This document shows positions 32 to 62,412 of a DNA stretch of 64,000 nucleotides, piece by piece. The translations under genes and the position numbers were made by a program. The DNA lies in sequence record NC_042013.1; one strand, given 5' to 3'. Every line of letters starts with the position of its first letter. The first letter of the stretch is position 1. The notes below the pieces were generated by a model. The model was not told the DNA's origin. It worked only from the letters and a program-made list of their open reading frames with translations, and did no database searches.

Positions 32-84
32 TTGACATTATTTTTGAATAGTGTATAACTGAATCATCGAAACGTTGAAGGAGA
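32..84 (+). promoter_or_regulatory. Early promoter-leader cassette (TTGACA-N16-TATAAC, ATCGAAAC, AAGGAG RBS)
   Basis: TTGACA 32-37, TATAAC 54-59, then catcgaaacgttgaaggag just before ATG 92; same layout recurs 9 more times in the window. Confidence 0.85.
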
Positions 85-30577: not shown

Positions 30578-30951
30578 TTTTTTTCCTTGATAATAAAATT
30601 ACCTATATCCAACGACAGCTTCTAATGGCTGTCGTATCAGGTATCTTGATCTACGTTGCATTGTCATCTTCTACAAATCAATGGATGTTCTTATATCTTA
30701 TTGCGGCTGGTTTTCTTAGTTTCGTAACCGTAATGGAAGACTTGATTAGTGTCTGCTCTAAAAAATGTGATGATATTTTTTATTTTCGATATTCGGCACT
30801 TTCGGTGTGCATTATCTCTTTTTCATTAGCAATGTTTATGGTATCATTCTTTTATTCAATTTATGATGTAATTGGGACGGTGTTGGTTTTGCTGTTTTAT
30901 TACATCTATGCAACTAAAGGTAAAAACGATGAAGACCCTATTTCGAGTTGA
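30574..30951 (+). CDS. Small multi-pass membrane protein (paralogue 4)
   Basis: 125 aa, about 4 hydrophobic segments, ATGA coupling. Confidence 0.7.
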   Translation: MIFFLDNKITYIQRQLLMAVVSGILIYVALSSSTNQWMFLYLIAAGFLSFVTVMEDLISVCSKKCDDIFYFRYSALSVCIISFSLAMFMVSFFYSIYDVIGTVLVLLFYYIYATKGKNDEDPISS

Positions 30952-31921
30952 ATCTGGATCGTCTCTTTACGGGACAAGGTTGCCAACGAGCGACACCGAT
31001 TTCAAATCCGTCCATCTACCGCCATATGATGATATCATTCGTATGCGTACAACTGGAGTTGTCAAAAAATCAACGGGTAGCGACAAAGTAAAAAACACCG
31101 TTGATGACATTGACGATGAAAGCTTTGTCTTGCGTAAGTTTTTTGACATGCTTATTGGCGGGGATATGGTTGCGCAAGAACTTTTATTTGTTTCACCTGA
31201 AACCGCACTTGTATTTGAACCTGAATGGAAAAAGGTTTATGACAACCGCCATTCGTTCATTGCGTCGGATATCAAAGGGTTCGTTGGTTATATTCAACGT
31301 CAGACAAACACGTACTCGACAAAAGGTCTTCGTGTTGAATCCGTAAGATCGTTTGTTGAGGTAATGAATAGTTTGATTGACAAATATTCAGCCACTACTA
31401 AGTTGAGGGATATTACAGAAATCAAAGAATACCTTGATCCATTTGTCGAAAAATATGATCATGCGCAGTATGTGTTGATGCCTAAGTCATATGGCAATGA
31501 TGAAATGGAAGAGTATTTTGAGCTTGTGAACCGTAAGGTTTCAATGAATGTTGCTTTGAAAGAAGTTGTAAAACTTTTTGCGGGTGTACTGAAAGACTAT
31601 GGTTCACGTTCTCTTGCAGCAGAACAGAATAAGGGTGTTGATTGGAAATCTGTTTATCATGCAATTCGTGTCTCTGAACAGGCAATCGAATTGTTAAGGG
31701 ATGGAGTCATTACGTTCCCTCGCCCTAATGTTTCTGAATTGCTAGACATTCGTGCAGGAAAGTATCTATATGCGGATATCGGTAGTCGGTTAGAGGATAA
31801 TCTTAACTTGCTTTTGGAACTGCGTGGAACAACATCACTTCCAAAAACCGTTAACGTTAAACTTCTTGAAAACATCCTTTTTGAGTTGCACGAGAATGTA
31901 GTCAAAGAAAAAGGGGGTTAA
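30929..31921 (+). CDS. Pol-beta superfamily nucleotidyltransferase (RlaP/PF10127-like)
   Basis: GSSLYGT...SDTDFKSV (GS...DxD) motif; C-terminal DWK...HAIR...Q..ELL..G.I.FPRP. Confidence 0.8.
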   Translation: MKTLFRVESGSSLYGTRLPTSDTDFKSVHLPPYDDIIRMRTTGVVKKSTGSDKVKNTVDDIDDESFVLRKFFDMLIGGDMVAQELLFVSPETALVFEPEWKKVYDNRHSFIASDIKGFVGYIQRQTNTYSTKGLRVESVRSFVEVMNSLIDKYSATTKLRDITEIKEYLDPFVEKYDHAQYVLMPKSYGNDEMEEYFELVNRKVSMNVALKEVVKLFAGVLKDYGSRSLAAEQNKGVDWKSVYHAIRVSEQAIELLRDGVITFPRPNVSELLDIRAGKYLYADIGSRLEDNLNLLLELRGTTSLPKTVNVKLLENILFELHENVVKEKGG

Positions 31922-40183: not shown

Positions 40184-40238
40184 ATCTCCTTAATTCGTTT
40201 CGATGATTAAGTTATACATCATTTGAAAATAATGTCAA
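40184..40238 (-). promoter_or_regulatory. Early promoter-leader cassette
   Basis: TTGACA-N16-TATAAC-ttaatc-ATCGAAAC-gaatt-AAGGAG. Confidence 0.85.
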
Positions 40239-50825: not shown

Positions 50826-50880
50826 ATCTCCTTCATTCGTTTCGATGATTAAGTTATACACTATCGAAAAATAAAGTCAA
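50826..50880 (-). promoter_or_regulatory. Early promoter-leader cassette
   Basis: TTGACT-N16-TATAAC-ttaatc-ATCGAAAC-gaatg-AAGGAG; TTCGAT in the spacer forms an IR with ATCGAA. Confidence 0.85.
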
Positions 50881-54899: not shown

Positions 54900-54953
54900 T
54901 CTCCTTTGTTCGTTTCGATGATTAAGTTATACACCATCGAAAAATAAAGTCAA
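54900..54953 (-). promoter_or_regulatory. Early promoter-leader cassette
   Basis: TTGACT-N16-TATAAC-ttaatc-ATCGAAAC-gaaca-AAGGAG; TTCGAT/ATCGAA IR flanks the -10. Confidence 0.85.
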
Positions 54954-55271: not shown

Positions 55272-55324
55272 ACTCCTGTAATGTTTCGATGATGTAGTTA
55301 TACACCATCGAAAAATAATGTCAA
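55272..55324 (-). promoter_or_regulatory. Early promoter-leader cassette
   Basis: TTGACA-N16-TATAAC-tacatc-ATCGAAAC-attac-AGGAG. Confidence 0.85.
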
Positions 55325-55594: not shown

Positions 55595-55848
55595 ATGCCT
55601 AATTGAAGAATTCGGCAACTATTTACTAGATACCGATTCCCTTCAAGTTCGTATGTGTTTAAAATATCTGTTTCCAAGCCATACACTGAATAGCCAGCAT
55701 GATTGGATGCACATCTAATTGCATCAGAAATATTTTTAAACACTATACCGCCTTTATAATCTTTTGACCTACCTAATTTTTTGAATTCATAACCGAATTC
55801 ATAAATTCCTTGATCATACGATTCTTTATGGCCGACAGTAAACATCAT
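55591..55848 (-). CDS. Hypothetical protein
   Basis: 85 aa, ATGA-coupled to the Thg1-like gene. Confidence 0.65.
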   Translation of the reverse strand: MMFTVGHKESYDQGIYEFGYEFKKLGRSKDYKGGIVFKNISDAIRCASNHAGYSVYGLETDILNTYELEGNRYLVNSCRILQLGI

Positions 55849-56636
55849 TGGCTTGAATAAACCAATTCCATTCTTTCTTCGAAGGGCATGTTTCTAAAAT
55901 CAACATTGAGATTAACATACCTTGATCGAATAACAGAATCATTTTCATATTCGCCGGTAGTATCGATTTCGTAGTTTTCGCGTTTCACAAAATTACCGAA
56001 CGTTTTAAGAATGTTTTCTTCAAAATCTGGAACGCTGTTTTTTACGAGTTCAAGTTTGTCACGTGTACTCATATTCATAAGTTTAGAATGACCAAACAAA
56101 TGATGTGCGTAATCCTGAATAACGTTTCTCGTAGCATCTTGCCAACGCCATACAAGCATGTTCACCGCTTCGAATTTTTCTTTAAAAACAACGAAACGAC
56201 AATCAAACGATACCTCAGGTACATACTTATACGCCTCGTTAAAATGGTAAATCCAACGAGCAGTAAAATATGACGCCAAAACAGAATTCAACTTAGTCAG
56301 ATTTCCGTTGAAAGGTAGCTGAGAAACGCCGCCCTTTACAAGTGGTTGGAAAAACAAACTAATTTCGTCTGATTGATGAAAACCGATAGTTAGGTTGAAC
56401 TCTTTAACGGTGTCTTTAACTGCTTCCACAAAAACATTTTCAAATGCATAATCTCTTGGTTTTACCAACATATTTGAAGATGCCATTTTCTTTGTAAATT
56501 TAGAAAAAGACCGACCATCAAGCCTTGCATATAGATACAAAGTGTCGGTTTCGTCATCATCCTTAAATTCTACAAACGAACGAAGTTCTCTTTCATAACA
56601 CTTCATCCGGTCGCCAAAATCATCATTTTTCATCAT
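55845..56636 (-). CDS. thg1: tRNA(His) guanylyltransferase Thg1-like 3'-5' polymerase
   Basis: DFGDRMK.YE, YARLDGRSFSKFTK, HQSDEISL, FDCRF, WRWQDATRN. Confidence 0.9.
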   Translation of the reverse strand: MMKNDDFGDRMKCYERELRSFVEFKDDDETDTLYLYARLDGRSFSKFTKKMASSNMLVKPRDYAFENVFVEAVKDTVKEFNLTIGFHQSDEISLFFQPLVKGGVSQLPFNGNLTKLNSVLASYFTARWIYHFNEAYKYVPEVSFDCRFVVFKEKFEAVNMLVWRWQDATRNVIQDYAHHLFGHSKLMNMSTRDKLELVKNSVPDFEENILKTFGNFVKRENYEIDTTGEYENDSVIRSRYVNLNVDFRNMPFEERMELVYSSQ

Positions 56637-56955
56637 TTTTACTTTCTTGAATTTCAGACGCGACCAAGATGATAGTGTCGCCATCCTCGATTACATTTAC
56701 CTTAAGACCGTTTCGTGTGAACAAACGTTCTTTAAGAGTATTATAAGTGCTTGCTTTGTTAAGGATATTTTTAGTCTCGAGGTACAACGCCTTGTTAACA
56801 CGTACCGCAGGAACTTTACCCTTTTTGATCATCTTGTGGAATTCAAGAAGAACACTAGTGACGTTATCAGCGTACGGATTGAAGGTGATACGTGATTTTT
56901 GTTTGTCCTTGATCTTCTTAACACGCTTTGAAAGTTTGTCGAAATCGAAGCCCAT
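56623..56955 (-). CDS. Basic hypothetical protein
   Basis: 110 aa, Lys-rich, in the operon. Confidence 0.65.
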   Translation of the reverse strand: MGFDFDKLSKRVKKIKDKQKSRITFNPYADNVTSVLLEFHKMIKKGKVPAVRVNKALYLETKNILNKASTYNTLKERLFTRNGLKVNVIEDGDTIILVASEIQESKNDEK

Positions 56956-57233
56956 TATTTTCTTCCTCCTTTGAGACTTAAAATCTTATCATACAACACA
57001 TCGTCTCCTGAAGCAAGTGTCAATAGTTCATCAATTGAATCTTCGTCAACGATATATTTTACTTCAGGGGTTGATAATGCATCAACAATTTTTGTTGAAA
57101 TGCCTAATGAAGGTCCACCTGATCCACTTAAAATTTCACCGGTTGCAACACACGTAATAATGGCGGCAGTTGCGAAACCGAAACCCTCTTGTGGATATAC
57201 AGGTGAAAGAATATAATATTCTGGTTTTTTCAT
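56955..57233 (-). CDS. Hypothetical protein
   Basis: 92 aa, in the operon. Confidence 0.6.
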   Translation of the reverse strand: MKKPEYYILSPVYPQEGFGFATAAIITCVATGEILSGSGGPSLGISTKIVDALSTPEVKYIVDEDSIDELLTLASGDDVLYDKILSLKGGRK

Positions 57234-57236
57234 TAA

Positions 57237-58430
57237 TTAATCCTCGTAATCAACTTCTATAAGGTTAAGTCTTACATTTTCTAACAAGTCTTGATAATCA
57301 GGATACACTAATTGTTCCTGATTTCCAAACAGATTTGTCATTGTTATATCAAGTTCATTTACTCTATCAAACTTTCTAATGAACCTCGTTGCGTTCTTTT
57401 TAAACAACTTTTCAAACATTCTGTTATGAAGTTTTTCAGCCTTTTGTTCAATAAGATTTCTATCTGTTTGGCGTTGAGTGATTACCACACGCTTCTCTTC
57501 TGGAAGTTTTGAATAATCAGCACACGTCATTACGTTGCTTTCTTTTATGATCAAATCCTCCATTCCTGCTTTACAATGAAATATGATAGAGACCATATGA
57601 TCAAAAACAGTAACGTTAGGGCTATAAACACAAATCTTGGCAATGAAATTCCCGGTGGTGGCATCCAATACAGTTGTACTACACGCACCGTGCGACATCG
57701 TAACTGAACTCGTTTTTTTAAGAACAAAAATGTATTTCTTGCCGGTAATCCTTATTTCCTCACCAGACAAAAATAGACCAGTTGAACCATCGCCCGCATA
57801 TGTTTCAAAAAGTTTTGCACTTCTTTTCAATGCTTTCTTTGTTTCCTTTTTAATTTCTGTTTTCTTTGGAACTGGAATTTGTACTTGACTTGGTGTTTGC
57901 GTCGACCGCTTATATTCGTGTGTTATTTTAAATTCACGAATCGTGTCTTTATGTTCAAACTCATTCCATTGACGTTCAATTCTGTCCCAAAAAGAAAAGT
58001 ATCTCTCGTTTCTTTTCAACTCGTCATATGGATTATAAATGTGGATTCCATTCTTTTTGATGGCGCGTGGCATATCACGCACGAATGAGCTTTCAGGTAT
58101 GGCCAGTTGACCAACCAACTCTCGTAATTCATGACGAATGTTTTTTGGACGATTAAACACCGCATATGCAAGGCAGAATGCAACGTGTTCAACTGGTGCG
58201 TTTTTTTGCCATTCAATATATTTTTCTTCTAACCAAATAGATTGCCCTGATATTGTTTGGTCTAAAGTTTCTCGTGAATTATCGTATGAATCAATCAATC
58301 CATTTGTATCTTCGTTGAACCATATAAGCCACGCATAAACATCTGGTGGAAGTGTTTTGAATTCCATCAGTGAGTCTATACAATATTGGATATCAGGTGC
58401 AATGTAGCACATAAGATTGATTTTAATCAT
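57237..58430 (-). CDS. Hypothetical protein with a conserved-looking ICVYSP...FD segment, partner of the GG-tailed protein
   Basis: 397 aa; starts 4 nt after the stop of 58435-58788. Confidence 0.75.
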   Translation of the reverse strand: MIKINLMCYIAPDIQYCIDSLMEFKTLPPDVYAWLIWFNEDTNGLIDSYDNSRETLDQTISGQSIWLEEKYIEWQKNAPVEHVAFCLAYAVFNRPKNIRHELRELVGQLAIPESSFVRDMPRAIKKNGIHIYNPYDELKRNERYFSFWDRIERQWNEFEHKDTIREFKITHEYKRSTQTPSQVQIPVPKKTEIKKETKKALKRSAKLFETYAGDGSTGLFLSGEEIRITGKKYIFVLKKTSSVTMSHGACSTTVLDATTGNFIAKICVYSPNVTVFDHMVSIIFHCKAGMEDLIIKESNVMTCADYSKLPEEKRVVITQRQTDRNLIEQKAEKLHNRMFEKLFKKNATRFIRKFDRVNELDITMTNLFGNQEQLVYPDYQDLLENVRLNLIEVDYED

Positions 58431-58434
58431 ATTA

Positions 58435-58788
58435 TTAACCGCCAGCGAACTGCTTCATACCAACCGAGTGATTAGTTGCAATTTCAGTTGCAGTGGTTGA
58501 CGGGCGAATTGTATCAATCATATTGGTGAGGCGGCTTACAATTCCAACCTTTCCGTCTGTGAACATCTTAGCAATGTCATCATCAGGAATATTAATGGTT
58601 CGGCTGGTAACGTCCTTAAGGGAATTAACCGGAATCTCGTCTCCCGTAAACGGTGCTACAATGAAAAATCGGACACCAGCATCCAGTTTTTTCTGGATGA
58701 TTTGTTCCATTTCTTTATCTTTAGCGGCGTCCCACGTTACTACAAGGTGTCCCATTTCATTTAAAAGAGTAAGGCTTCGTTCAATCAT
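58435..58788 (-). CDS. Small protein ending in Gly-Gly (ubiquitin-like modifier candidate)
   Basis: 117 aa, AGGAG RBS, C-terminus HSVGMKQFAGG-stop; beta-strand-like N-terminus. Confidence 0.75.
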   Translation of the reverse strand: MIERSLTLLNEMGHLVVTWDAAKDKEMEQIIQKKLDAGVRFFIVAPFTGDEIPVNSLKDVTSRTINIPDDDIAKMFTDGKVGIVSRLTNMIDTIRPSTTATEIATNHSVGMKQFAGG

Positions 58789-58837
58789 TATACACTCCTA
58801 AAGTAAAAGGCCACCGTAAACGATGGCCTTGATATTG

Positions 58838-59185
58838 TCAAGAACGCTTTTTGTTCTTTCTGGCAAGCTTTGGTCGCTTGATAGCAATATCCGAAAGAGA
58901 ATATCGAAGGGCGAGCATAAGGGAGTCTTCATCATTCTGAAGATAAACCTTATCAACGTAAACGATCTTTTCGGCATAAGAACCGTCGTCGTTACGAATG
59001 GACTTTTCGTGGGTGTAGCAAGTTACCTTGTAATAACCGGAACAATTTTCGCGGCACCAAGAAAGAATATCATCAGGGGCAACCTGATGTTCATTTACCC
59101 AAAACTTATGGGTGAAAACGTAATAATACGAAATGTCACCAAAACGTTCGCTATGACGACCGAAATCCTTAATGGTTGTAGACAT
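58838..59185 (-). CDS. Early hypothetical protein (small expanded phage domain)
   Basis: DDILSWCRENCSG...VYLQNDEDSLMLALRY; first gene after a cassette. Confidence 0.7.
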   Translation of the reverse strand: MSTTIKDFGRHSERFGDISYYYVFTHKFWVNEHQVAPDDILSWCRENCSGYYKVTCYTHEKSIRNDDGSYAEKIVYVDKVYLQNDEDSLMLALRYSLSDIAIKRPKLARKNKKRS

Positions 59186-59192
59186 TCAAAAC

Positions 59193-59249
59193 ACTCCTTT
59201 GCTTCGTTATCGATGCAAAAGGTATATCATTCGTGATTTAAGATGTCAA
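59193..59249 (-). promoter_or_regulatory. Variant early cassette (ATCGATAAC)
   Basis: TTGACA-N17-TATACC-ttttgc-ATCGATAAC-gaagca-AAGGAG; ccttttgc/gcaaagg stem. Confidence 0.7.
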
Positions 59250-61785: not shown

Positions 61786-62412
61786 TTACCTCATTATAAA
61801 TTTCTTTGGGTATGTATTAAGGATAATATCATGGTTTACGCGGGGAATCCATTTTTTCCATTCTTTTACTTCACCCAAACTGATTAAAGTTCGAATTTCA
61901 GTTGCAGATGGGCAATCGTTTTTCTCGCGGTCGATGATATGAAGAAGGCGTTCCTCCCCGTTAGGAGCGATAAAACCATCCTCATCATCAAACGGTGGAA
62001 GGTCTGAGTAACTTTCAACCATAGGATCAACCATCATTTCGTTATAAAAACGTTCGGCGTACCATACAGCGTCTGCTTTGCTTCCAGAATAATAATCGGT
62101 TACATTTTCGTAACCGTACTTTTTACACATATCGAGTACGTAATCAACCCAATCATTTTTGGAACGATTTTTATCTTTTTTCGGTAAATCTTCCAATGGA
62201 ATAATTACCAGACGATCACCAAAAACATTTCTAAACATTTCGGTTCTAATGACCTGTGTCCAAGGATTTGATTCGTCAATATCATTGCCAGTAGAACCAA
62301 GTCCAAGAATAGCGGTATCACATTCGCGTGTAATACGTGTTAAGATATCAAGGTGGCCGATATGCGGGGGTTGACCTCGCATTACGGCAAAACCAATTCT
62401 TTTACTTGCCAT
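61786..62412 (-). CDS. NMN/NaMN adenylyltransferase (NadM/NadR-like cytidylyltransferase fold)
   Basis: RGQPPHIGH (HxGH), ILGLGS, NPWT..IR.EM, SATEIR; likely start MASKRIG at 62412. Confidence 0.82.
   Translation of the reverse strand: MASKRIGFAVMRGQPPHIGHLDILTRITRECDTAILGLGSTGNDIDESNPWTQVIRTEMFRNVFGDRLVIIPLEDLPKKDKNRSKNDWVDYVLDMCKKYGYENVTDYYSGSKADAVWYAERFYNEMMVDPMVESYSDLPPFDDEDGFIAPNGEERLLHIIDREKNDCPSATEIRTLISLGEVKEWKKWIPRVNHDIILNTYPKKFIMR

Follow-up and report, generated by a model that had tools for sequence, protein, structure and literature searches.

A strictly paired two-gene module of phages: a Gly-Gly-ended small protein and its cysteine-centred partner in Agrobacterium phage Atu_ph07

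The gene pair

Two adjacent genes of Agrobacterium phage Atu_ph07, both annotated as hypothetical proteins, are analysed here in a stretch of 64,000 nucleotides from sequence record NC_042013.1 (hereafter the window). The first gene encodes a small protein of 117 amino acids that ends in Gly-Gly (GG), and the second encodes a partner protein of 397 amino acids. Both constitute a strictly paired, co-evolving two-gene module of phages, in which selection keeps the terminal glycine of the small protein and a group of polar residues centred on one cysteine of the partner. An earlier note on this DNA had proposed that the two genes are a ubiquitin-like (Ubl) conjugation pair. Window coordinates plus 124,000 give the coordinates in MF403008.1 (Agrobacterium phage Atu_ph07, 490,380 bp), to which bases 57000-59200 are 100% identical. 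The pair corresponds to coding sequences (CDS) 231 and 230, because the genome paper numbers the tRNA-His guanylyltransferase CDS 227 and a methyltransferase CDS 235. The main features of the pair are the following:

58795-58799, minus strand: Shine-Dalgarno-like AGGAG, 6 nucleotides 5' of the ATG of the small gene (read from the sequence)
58435-58788, minus strand: small protein gene, CDS 231, AUZ95013, 117 amino acids (open reading frame and translation)
58438-58443, minus strand: codons of the terminal Gly116-Gly117, with the TAA stop at 58435-58437 directly after them
57237-58430, minus strand: partner gene, CDS 230, AUZ95012, UniProt A0A2L0UZL2, 397 amino acids (open reading frame and translation)
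57495-57851, minus strand: catalytic-like conserved core of the partner, residues ~194-312 (alignment)
57690-57692, minus strand: codon of His247, the H of an H-G motif placed before the third strand of the core (29 of 32 non-redundant partners)
57630-57632, minus strand: TGT codon of Cys267, the proposed nucleophile (sequence; invariant in 32 of 32 non-redundant partners)
57600-57602, minus strand: codon of Asp277, where the helix after the Cys loop begins in the model (invariant in 32 of 32)
57534-57536, minus strand: codon of Asn299 (invariant in 32 of 32)

These features agree with several details of the earlier note: a 117-residue open reading frame (ORF) that ends in ...KQFAGG directly before the stop and has its own ribosome-binding site (AGGAG, 6 nucleotides before the ATG), a 397-residue ORF that starts 4 nucleotides past that stop, and a cysteine codon at 57630-57632, which on the minus strand reads TGT and is Cys267.

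The small GG-tailed protein

A GG end in one genome is unremarkable, since 3 of the 211 ORFs of at least 60 amino acids called mechanically in the window end in GG-stop; therefore the weight of the finding rests on conservation. The other two are located at 30872-31921 (plus strand, 349 amino acids) and 62159-62374 (plus strand, 71 amino acids), and neither fits the small-protein profile. When 1.84 billion representative proteins were searched with a profile, 363 clusters at 50% identity were recovered at E <= 0.001 and 159 at E <= 1e-10. Most members of this family have 115-135 amino acids and are aligned through their very last residue. Among the 150 relatives listed from the 363 clusters, 132 end in GG, 11 in AG, two in SG and one in RG; the remaining four look truncated or extended, one of them being GG plus two residues. 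The ends found in 32 non-redundant loci are 28 GG, three AG and one SG. The GG end is consequently kept in 132 of these 150 relatives and replaced by AG, SG or RG in 14 more, a result that leaves the idea of a GG-tailed modifier standing. The close relatives (55-97% identity), which belong to Sinorhizobium phage Phosso and to metagenomic jumbo-phage contigs, have the GG end in all cases.

An alignment of 81 members shows that G13, W19, G38, D69, G116 and G117 are invariant and that the last ~25 residues make up a conserved tail preceded by a variable linker. The layout of the protein comprises an N-terminal domain (~residues 1-85) that is beta-grasp-like in a low-confidence model, the variable linker and the conserved tail ending in GG. 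Structure models of the small protein and of its partner were built from shallow alignments, before the large family was found. The AlphaFold2 model of the small protein has a mean predicted local distance difference test (pLDDT) of 49.9, with the tail below 50, and the order of its elements is strand-strand-helix-strand-strand-strand. When this weak model was compared to the PDB using Foldseek, nearly all the matches were beta-grasp proteins (PB1, SUMO, ubiquitin, UBX, CIDE), with probabilities up to 0.97 and all E values at or above 0.03. Thus, it is probable, as judged from the model, that the small protein adopts a beta-grasp fold. The short beta-strand segments and the flexible tail pointed out in the earlier note agree with the model, but this low-confidence model is their sole basis.

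At the level of sequence, the small protein has no match in Pfam, PHROGs, NCBIfam, PADLOC or the PDB sequences, and none of the 81 members matches the ThiS/MoaD Pfam family. A profile match to the ubiquitin-like domain of BAG6 (E = 0.018) was discarded, as it depends on the acidic tag of the construct and its register does not agree with that of the predicted elements. In some members of the family the GG-tailed domain is preceded by an N-terminal extension of 110-135 amino acids: P0163 (1-122), P0155 (1-111) and P0124 (1-135). The extensions of P0163 and P0155 are mutually homologous (E = 7e-8) and have no Pfam match; miscalled gene starts are a possible origin.

The partner protein

The partner has a conserved alpha/beta core. 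A helical N-terminal domain and a basic linker helix come before it, a helical C-terminus comes after it, and both terminal regions are variable. Its close relatives show identities of 31-99%. G223, C267, D277 and N299 are invariant in the 32 non-redundant partners. H247 is present in 29 of them; in the remaining three, an insertion contains a His a few positions upstream. E291 is also found in 29. C86 and C286 are kept in close relatives but are not conserved in the wider set, so a single cysteine is conserved overall. Cys267 is thus retained in 32 of 32 partners, and the catalytic cysteine suggested at first sight of the sequence stays a valid candidate. Two short partners (262 and 298 amino acids, loci L032 and L033) retain only the core, equivalent to residues ~194-312 of the protein in the window.

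The model of the partner (pLDDT 71.7) shows the helical N-terminal domain, a disordered basic linker, the core and a long helix. The elements of the core are, in order, a helix, four strands, a loop, two helices and a strand; H247-G248 immediately precede the third strand and C267 closes the fourth, and according to this model H247 and C267 could be neighbours across a hairpin. The model stored in BFVD for A0A2L0UZL2 superposes on the one built here with a template modelling (TM) score of 0.36 and a root-mean-square deviation of 32 Å at 100% sequence identity; the placement of the domains is unreliable because both models superpose poorly.

Searches for known relatives of the partner gave negative results. 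There is no recurrent Pfam family among 23 partner members at E values up to 1, partner profiles found nothing among the PDB sequences, and Foldseek on the partner model gave a best E of 1.2 in the PDB and returned only the partner itself from BFVD. PHROGs and NCBIfam likewise yielded no match. The partner apparently represents a new enzyme fold, and its candidate catalytic residues are clear.

Pairing and co-divergence

Two sets of loci were compared. The first consists of the window, three close relatives and 19 viral loci (23 in total), and the second comes from a viral and metagenome scan that provided 19 informative loci, four further loci being too short. With the profiles built here, each of the 23 loci in the first set, and each of the 19 informative loci in the second, was found to have the partner gene downstream of the small gene. 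Therefore the two genes occur together in every informative phage or metagenome locus, and on this point too the proposal of a functional pair was not refuted.

The intergenic gap is between -8 and +9 nucleotides in 22 of 32 non-redundant pairs, which is consistent with translational coupling. In six pairs the gap is 155-753 nucleotides and contains small inserted ORFs, and four apparent large overlaps are artefacts of start calling. The inserted ORFs (one or two per locus, small and unrelated) are located at L018:7377-8128, L021:7360-8059 and L026:7350-8110 and also in loci L017, L025 and L046; one of them, in L026, carries a DUF4926 domain. On account of these six loci, the pair cannot be regarded as tightly coupled without exception.

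The pairwise identities of both proteins co-vary (r = 0.80), and none of 2000 permutations reached this value. Mean identity is 36% for the small protein and 22% for the partner, so that the former is the better conserved. No third conserved gene (E1, E2, JAB and ATP-grasp included) was found beside the pair within ~6-7 kb in the 23 loci. Two other recurrent "families" near the pair turned out to be antisense shadow ORFs of the small gene. Besides, no informative domain was identified in the N-terminal extensions, in the ORFs between both genes or in the long and short variants of the partner.

Distribution and genomic neighbourhood

The pair is carried by viral contigs of 8-608 kb, many of them from uncultured phages. 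The module is not restricted to jumbo phages, because several of these contigs have 40-108 kb. The statement in the earlier note that similar pairs occur in other large phages proved right, and it extends to these mid-sized phage contigs. Among 50,697 deposited phage genomes the only carriers are Atu_ph07 and Phosso, and no plasmid copies were found.

The neighbours identified across loci include MT-A70 and N6/N4 methyltransferases, DUF4942, an AAA ATPase, family A DNA polymerase, DnaB-type and HerA-type helicases, NUDIX proteins and a homing endonuclease. In the window, an adenine methyltransferase is encoded on each side of the pair, and a Thg1-like enzyme, a NUDIX hydrolase and a thioredoxin are encoded nearby; the three virion gene clusters that were reported for Atu_ph07 do not include the pair. 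As the neighbours are replication and DNA-modification genes and not virion genes, a role inside the infected cell (for example in host takeover or counter-defence) is suggested.

The Thg1-like tRNA-His guanylyltransferase (55845-56684, minus strand) belongs to the same leftward block; it is annotated with 789 bp, and its longest ORF has 840 bp and overlaps the upstream gene of 110 amino acids, so that its start site is uncertain.

A small-protein relative with 42% identity is encoded in the Rhizobiales genome UBXM01000020.1 (L008:5968-6339, plus strand); it ends in GG plus MQ and has no partner gene. Divergently upstream of it (L008:1899-5757, minus strand) there is an operon coding for an ATP-grasp ligase of the GSH-S/RimK type, a MATCAP/DUF1704 carboxypeptidase and an FGase amidohydrolase. 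This copy could be a captured phage gene or part of a different C-terminal modification system. The C-terminal ligation of amino acids suggested by this operon was rejected for the phage pair, as such genes are present in no phage locus.

Upstream signals and adjacent gene

Two further features flank the pair:

58807-58830, minus strand: terminator-like hairpin with a 10-bp stem (6 G-C pairs) and a T-rich tail (consensus scan only)
56955-57233, minus strand: downstream gene of 92 amino acids, CDS 229, outside the universal module

The earlier note placed both genes in an early operon driven by a repeated cassette. This description did not hold, given that between 55600 and 64000 no copy of the cassette lies upstream of the pair on its strand; the best match in this interval has 10 mismatches in 24 positions. 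The small gene is immediately preceded by the terminator-like hairpin, which sits between it and an upstream gene of 115 amino acids. The intergenic cassette of ~50 nucleotides is itself repeated in the window, at 32-59 (plus strand) and at 50853-50880, 54926-54953 and 55297-55324 (minus strand), that is, four matches against none expected by chance, with weaker copies near 40211, 54067 and 55549. It holds a sigma-70-like TTGAC...TATAAC, precedes small genes located downstream of the pair and is probably a family of phage promoters. Around the pair, sigma-70-like matches are no more frequent than expected by chance.

CDS 229 has 31-34% identity to the gene that follows the partner in loci L003 and L005, and is kept only in the close jumbo-phage relatives; it has no Pfam match and is absent beside the pair in the wider locus set.

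Comparison with known systems

The small protein resembles the carriers ThiS, MoaD and Urm1 and the ubiquitin-like modifiers in its terminal GG (or Ala/Ser-Gly), its probable beta-grasp fold and its position beside the gene of a working partner. However, it has no sequence match to Ubl, ThiS or MoaD proteins, it has ~40 residues of linker and tail before the GG, and an E1-like adenylating gene was found neither near the pair nor in the annotated genome; use of a host E1 is possible.

The bacterial BilABCD, Bub and 6E systems, and type II CBASS (where Cap2 and Cap3 act on the tail of the CD-NTase), share with the pair a context of phage-host conflict and a terminal Gly on a flexible tail offered to a cysteine enzyme, the latter being proposed here for the phage proteins. 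Nevertheless, those systems are cellular and always contain E1 and E2 domains, usually accompanied by JAB or another deconjugating peptidase, whereas the pair is phage-borne, consists of two genes and has neither a PADLOC match nor a Pfam match, thus no Prok-E2, ThiF or JAB. PADLOC gave no relevant match for the two proteins or for eight diverse relatives, and a survey of jumbo phages (PMC7824862) contains no mention of such a system.

The closest phage precedent is the TAPI/TAPK pair of phages lambda and T1, where TAPI, a Ubl protein with a conserved C-terminal glycine, pairs with TAPK, which has JAB and NlpC/P60 domains (PMC1779556). As proposed for the pair described here, a phage protein of Ubl type with a C-terminal Gly is combined with a partner of thiol-enzyme type and no E1. 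On the other hand, TAPI and TAPK belong to a tail-assembly cluster and TAPI has a further C-terminal domain after the Gly (PMC1779556). The pair is instead surrounded by genes for replication and DNA modification, nothing follows the GG of the small protein, and the partner matches neither JAB nor NlpC/P60.

The modelled core of the partner is also reminiscent of E2 enzymes (UBC fold), with one invariant Cys after a four-strand meander, flanked by helices, a His upstream and invariant polar residues downstream. However, the likeness is limited to the order of elements; there is no Pfam match and no significant Foldseek match, and membership is unsupported. The spacing of the E2 motif differs from that of the partner.

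In the way it would work, the module is closest to the Ubl and carrier systems with a C-terminal glycine, with no demonstrable membership in any known family. Both protein families are unannotated, and the module is best described as a putative C-terminal-Gly carrier or modifier with a novel partner.

Proposed mechanism

The simplest reading, inferred as are the beta-grasp fold, any covalent intermediate and the target, is that the tail of the small protein contacts the cysteine centre of the partner and delivers its glycine there. The small protein would be a beta-grasp-like carrier or modifier working as a pair with the partner, and its conserved, probably flexible tail would bring the terminal Gly into a centre made up of Cys267, His247, Asp277 and Asn299. 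The most likely chemistry is one in which the carboxyl group of this Gly would be held as a thioester on Cys267, from which the acyl group would go to an amine of a target protein, the choice of the target depending on the fast-evolving N-terminal domain of the partner. Because neither an ATP-binding signature nor an E1 was found, activation of the carboxylate would need a host E1-type enzyme (MoeB, ThiF) or an unrecognised activity of the partner. This Ubl-like acyl transfer, with a thioester on Cys267 followed by transfer to a target, is tentatively preferred, at somewhat less than an even chance. Host or defence proteins as targets are a matter of speculation.

The evidence in favour of this transfer comes from the GG, AG, SG and RG ends, the tail of ~25 residues, the constant pairing with tight gaps, the co-divergence and the invariant residues; further points are the short partners reduced to the core, the weak Foldseek matches to beta-grasp proteins, the lack of a third gene and the DNA-metabolism neighbours. 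With respect to the ubiquitin-like conjugation pair put forward in the earlier note, its GG, its co-occurrence and its conserved cysteine were confirmed; the operon description was not, nor is there any resemblance to a known E1, E2, E3 or peptidase.

Several observations weigh against Ubl-like transfer. Formation of a thioester from a free carboxylate requires activation, and no adenylating or ATP-using domain was found in the partner, beside the pair or in the published function table of Atu_ph07. That genome-wide table lists neither ThiF/MoeB/E1 nor JAB, and no locus has such a gene conserved near the pair, in agreement with the early remark that no E1 or JAB gene is visible. The partner fits no E1, E2, E3 or peptidase model or structure among those searched. 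The model of the small protein is of low confidence (pLDDT 50) with every Foldseek E value at or above 0.03, and its sole sequence match to a ubiquitin-like domain, that of BAG6, is an artefact. Finally, His247 falls short of strict invariance, and the invariant residues are defined as a set by the alignment, their clustering in space and their contact with the tail being putative.

A more ambitious version, rather unlikely as it stands, sees in the pair a minimal phage tagging system, where a cysteine ligase of new fold would charge itself with the GG-tailed Ubl, without a canonical E1 or by hijacking the host MoeB/ThiF, and would tag host proteins such as defence proteins, or substrates of the phage Clp proteases. 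Atu_ph07 encodes its own ClpX, ClpA, ClpB, ClpP and ClpS homologues, outside the window (Table S1, PMC6102473), and a tagging system that feeds a phage-encoded protease would be an attractive link.

Alternative explanations

It is also unlikely that the partner is a GG-specific cysteine (iso)peptidase of new fold, with the small protein as its decoy, product-state regulator or mimic of the substrate; for example, the small protein could titrate or jam host Ubl defence enzymes of the Bil, Bub or CBASS Cap2 type, and the partner could strip host Ubl from phage proteins. The partner alignment does contain a Cys-His(+Asp/Asn) set typical of thiol peptidases (C267, D277 and N299 invariant, H247 in 29 of 32), a peptidase needs no ATP, and the module is phage-borne and located in non-structural regions. 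TAPI and TAPK of lambda and T1 offer a precedent for a C-terminal-Gly Ubl associated with peptidase domains (PMC1779556), and the bacterial relative with two residues past the GG looks like a precursor. However, the phage copies already end in GG and need no processing, no peptidase family or fold was detected, and the order His-Cys-Asp-Asn with 20 residues from His to Cys fits none of the peptidase clans that could be tested. Neither do the proteins show similarity to the PADLOC models of defence Ubl systems, and a decoy does not require the strict 1:1 pairing and co-divergence that were found.

Distinctly unlikely is a sulfur carrier similar to ThiS/MoaD, which would be adenylated and thiocarboxylated by the shared E1-like enzyme of the host, while the partner, with Cys267 as persulfide or relay, would thiolate a nucleic acid or a metabolite in phage DNA/RNA modification. 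A C-terminal Gly-Gly is the hallmark of thiocarboxylate carriers, and the TtuB/TtuC and MoaD/MoeB systems rely on a shared E1 whose gene lies elsewhere. The gene of such a carrier is often adjacent to that of the enzyme that uses the sulfur and away from that of the shared E1 (PMC1779556), an arrangement that would explain the lack of a dedicated E1 here. The neighbourhood, rich in DNA methyltransferases and in Atu_ph07 also provided with the tRNA-His guanylyltransferase, is in line with this function. Nevertheless, the partner contains no PP-loop, rhodanese, Fe-S cluster motif or other known sulfurtransferase signature and has a single conserved Cys, and no ThiS/MoaD Pfam match appeared in the 81 members of the small-protein family. 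The ~40-residue tail past the globular domain is also unlike ThiS and MoaD, in which the GG directly follows the last strand. The missing activation step weakens this explanation as well as Ubl transfer.

Least likely among those considered is a non-covalent complex of two subunits, in which the small protein would be a regulatory subunit, a chaperone or an antitoxin-like inhibitor whose tail plugs the active site, the glycines being kept to fill a narrow pocket and the real substrate of the partner being something else. The GG tail of MoaD can sit non-covalently in the active site of MoaE; besides, a small upstream gene overlapping a larger enzyme gene and a disordered tail recall inhibitor-enzyme and type II toxin-antitoxin pairs, and the basic linker helix of the partner could be set beside the invariant acidic loop around D69 of the small protein. 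However, the small protein has no DNA-binding domain match, the pair occurs in lytic jumbo phages, the searches found no plasmid copies and a single chromosomal one that lacks the partner, and the near-absolute conservation of the terminal Gly exceeds what steric fit usually demands.

Significance

Recent work showed that bacteria use ubiquitin-like conjugation as a weapon against phages (Bil, Bub, CBASS Cap2), and the literature searched contains no description of a counterpart on the phage side. The pair of Atu_ph07 is a concrete, widespread and compact candidate, made up of two genes and represented by 363 clusters at 50% identity. If the minimal tagging system were true, phages would for the first time be seen to use ubiquitin-like conjugation machinery against bacteria, and if the pair does conjugate, it would reveal a new way of activating or transferring a Ubl. 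Should it prove to be a sulfur carrier or a peptidase instead, it would still add a new phage function among the genes of DNA metabolism, together with two protein families that are new.

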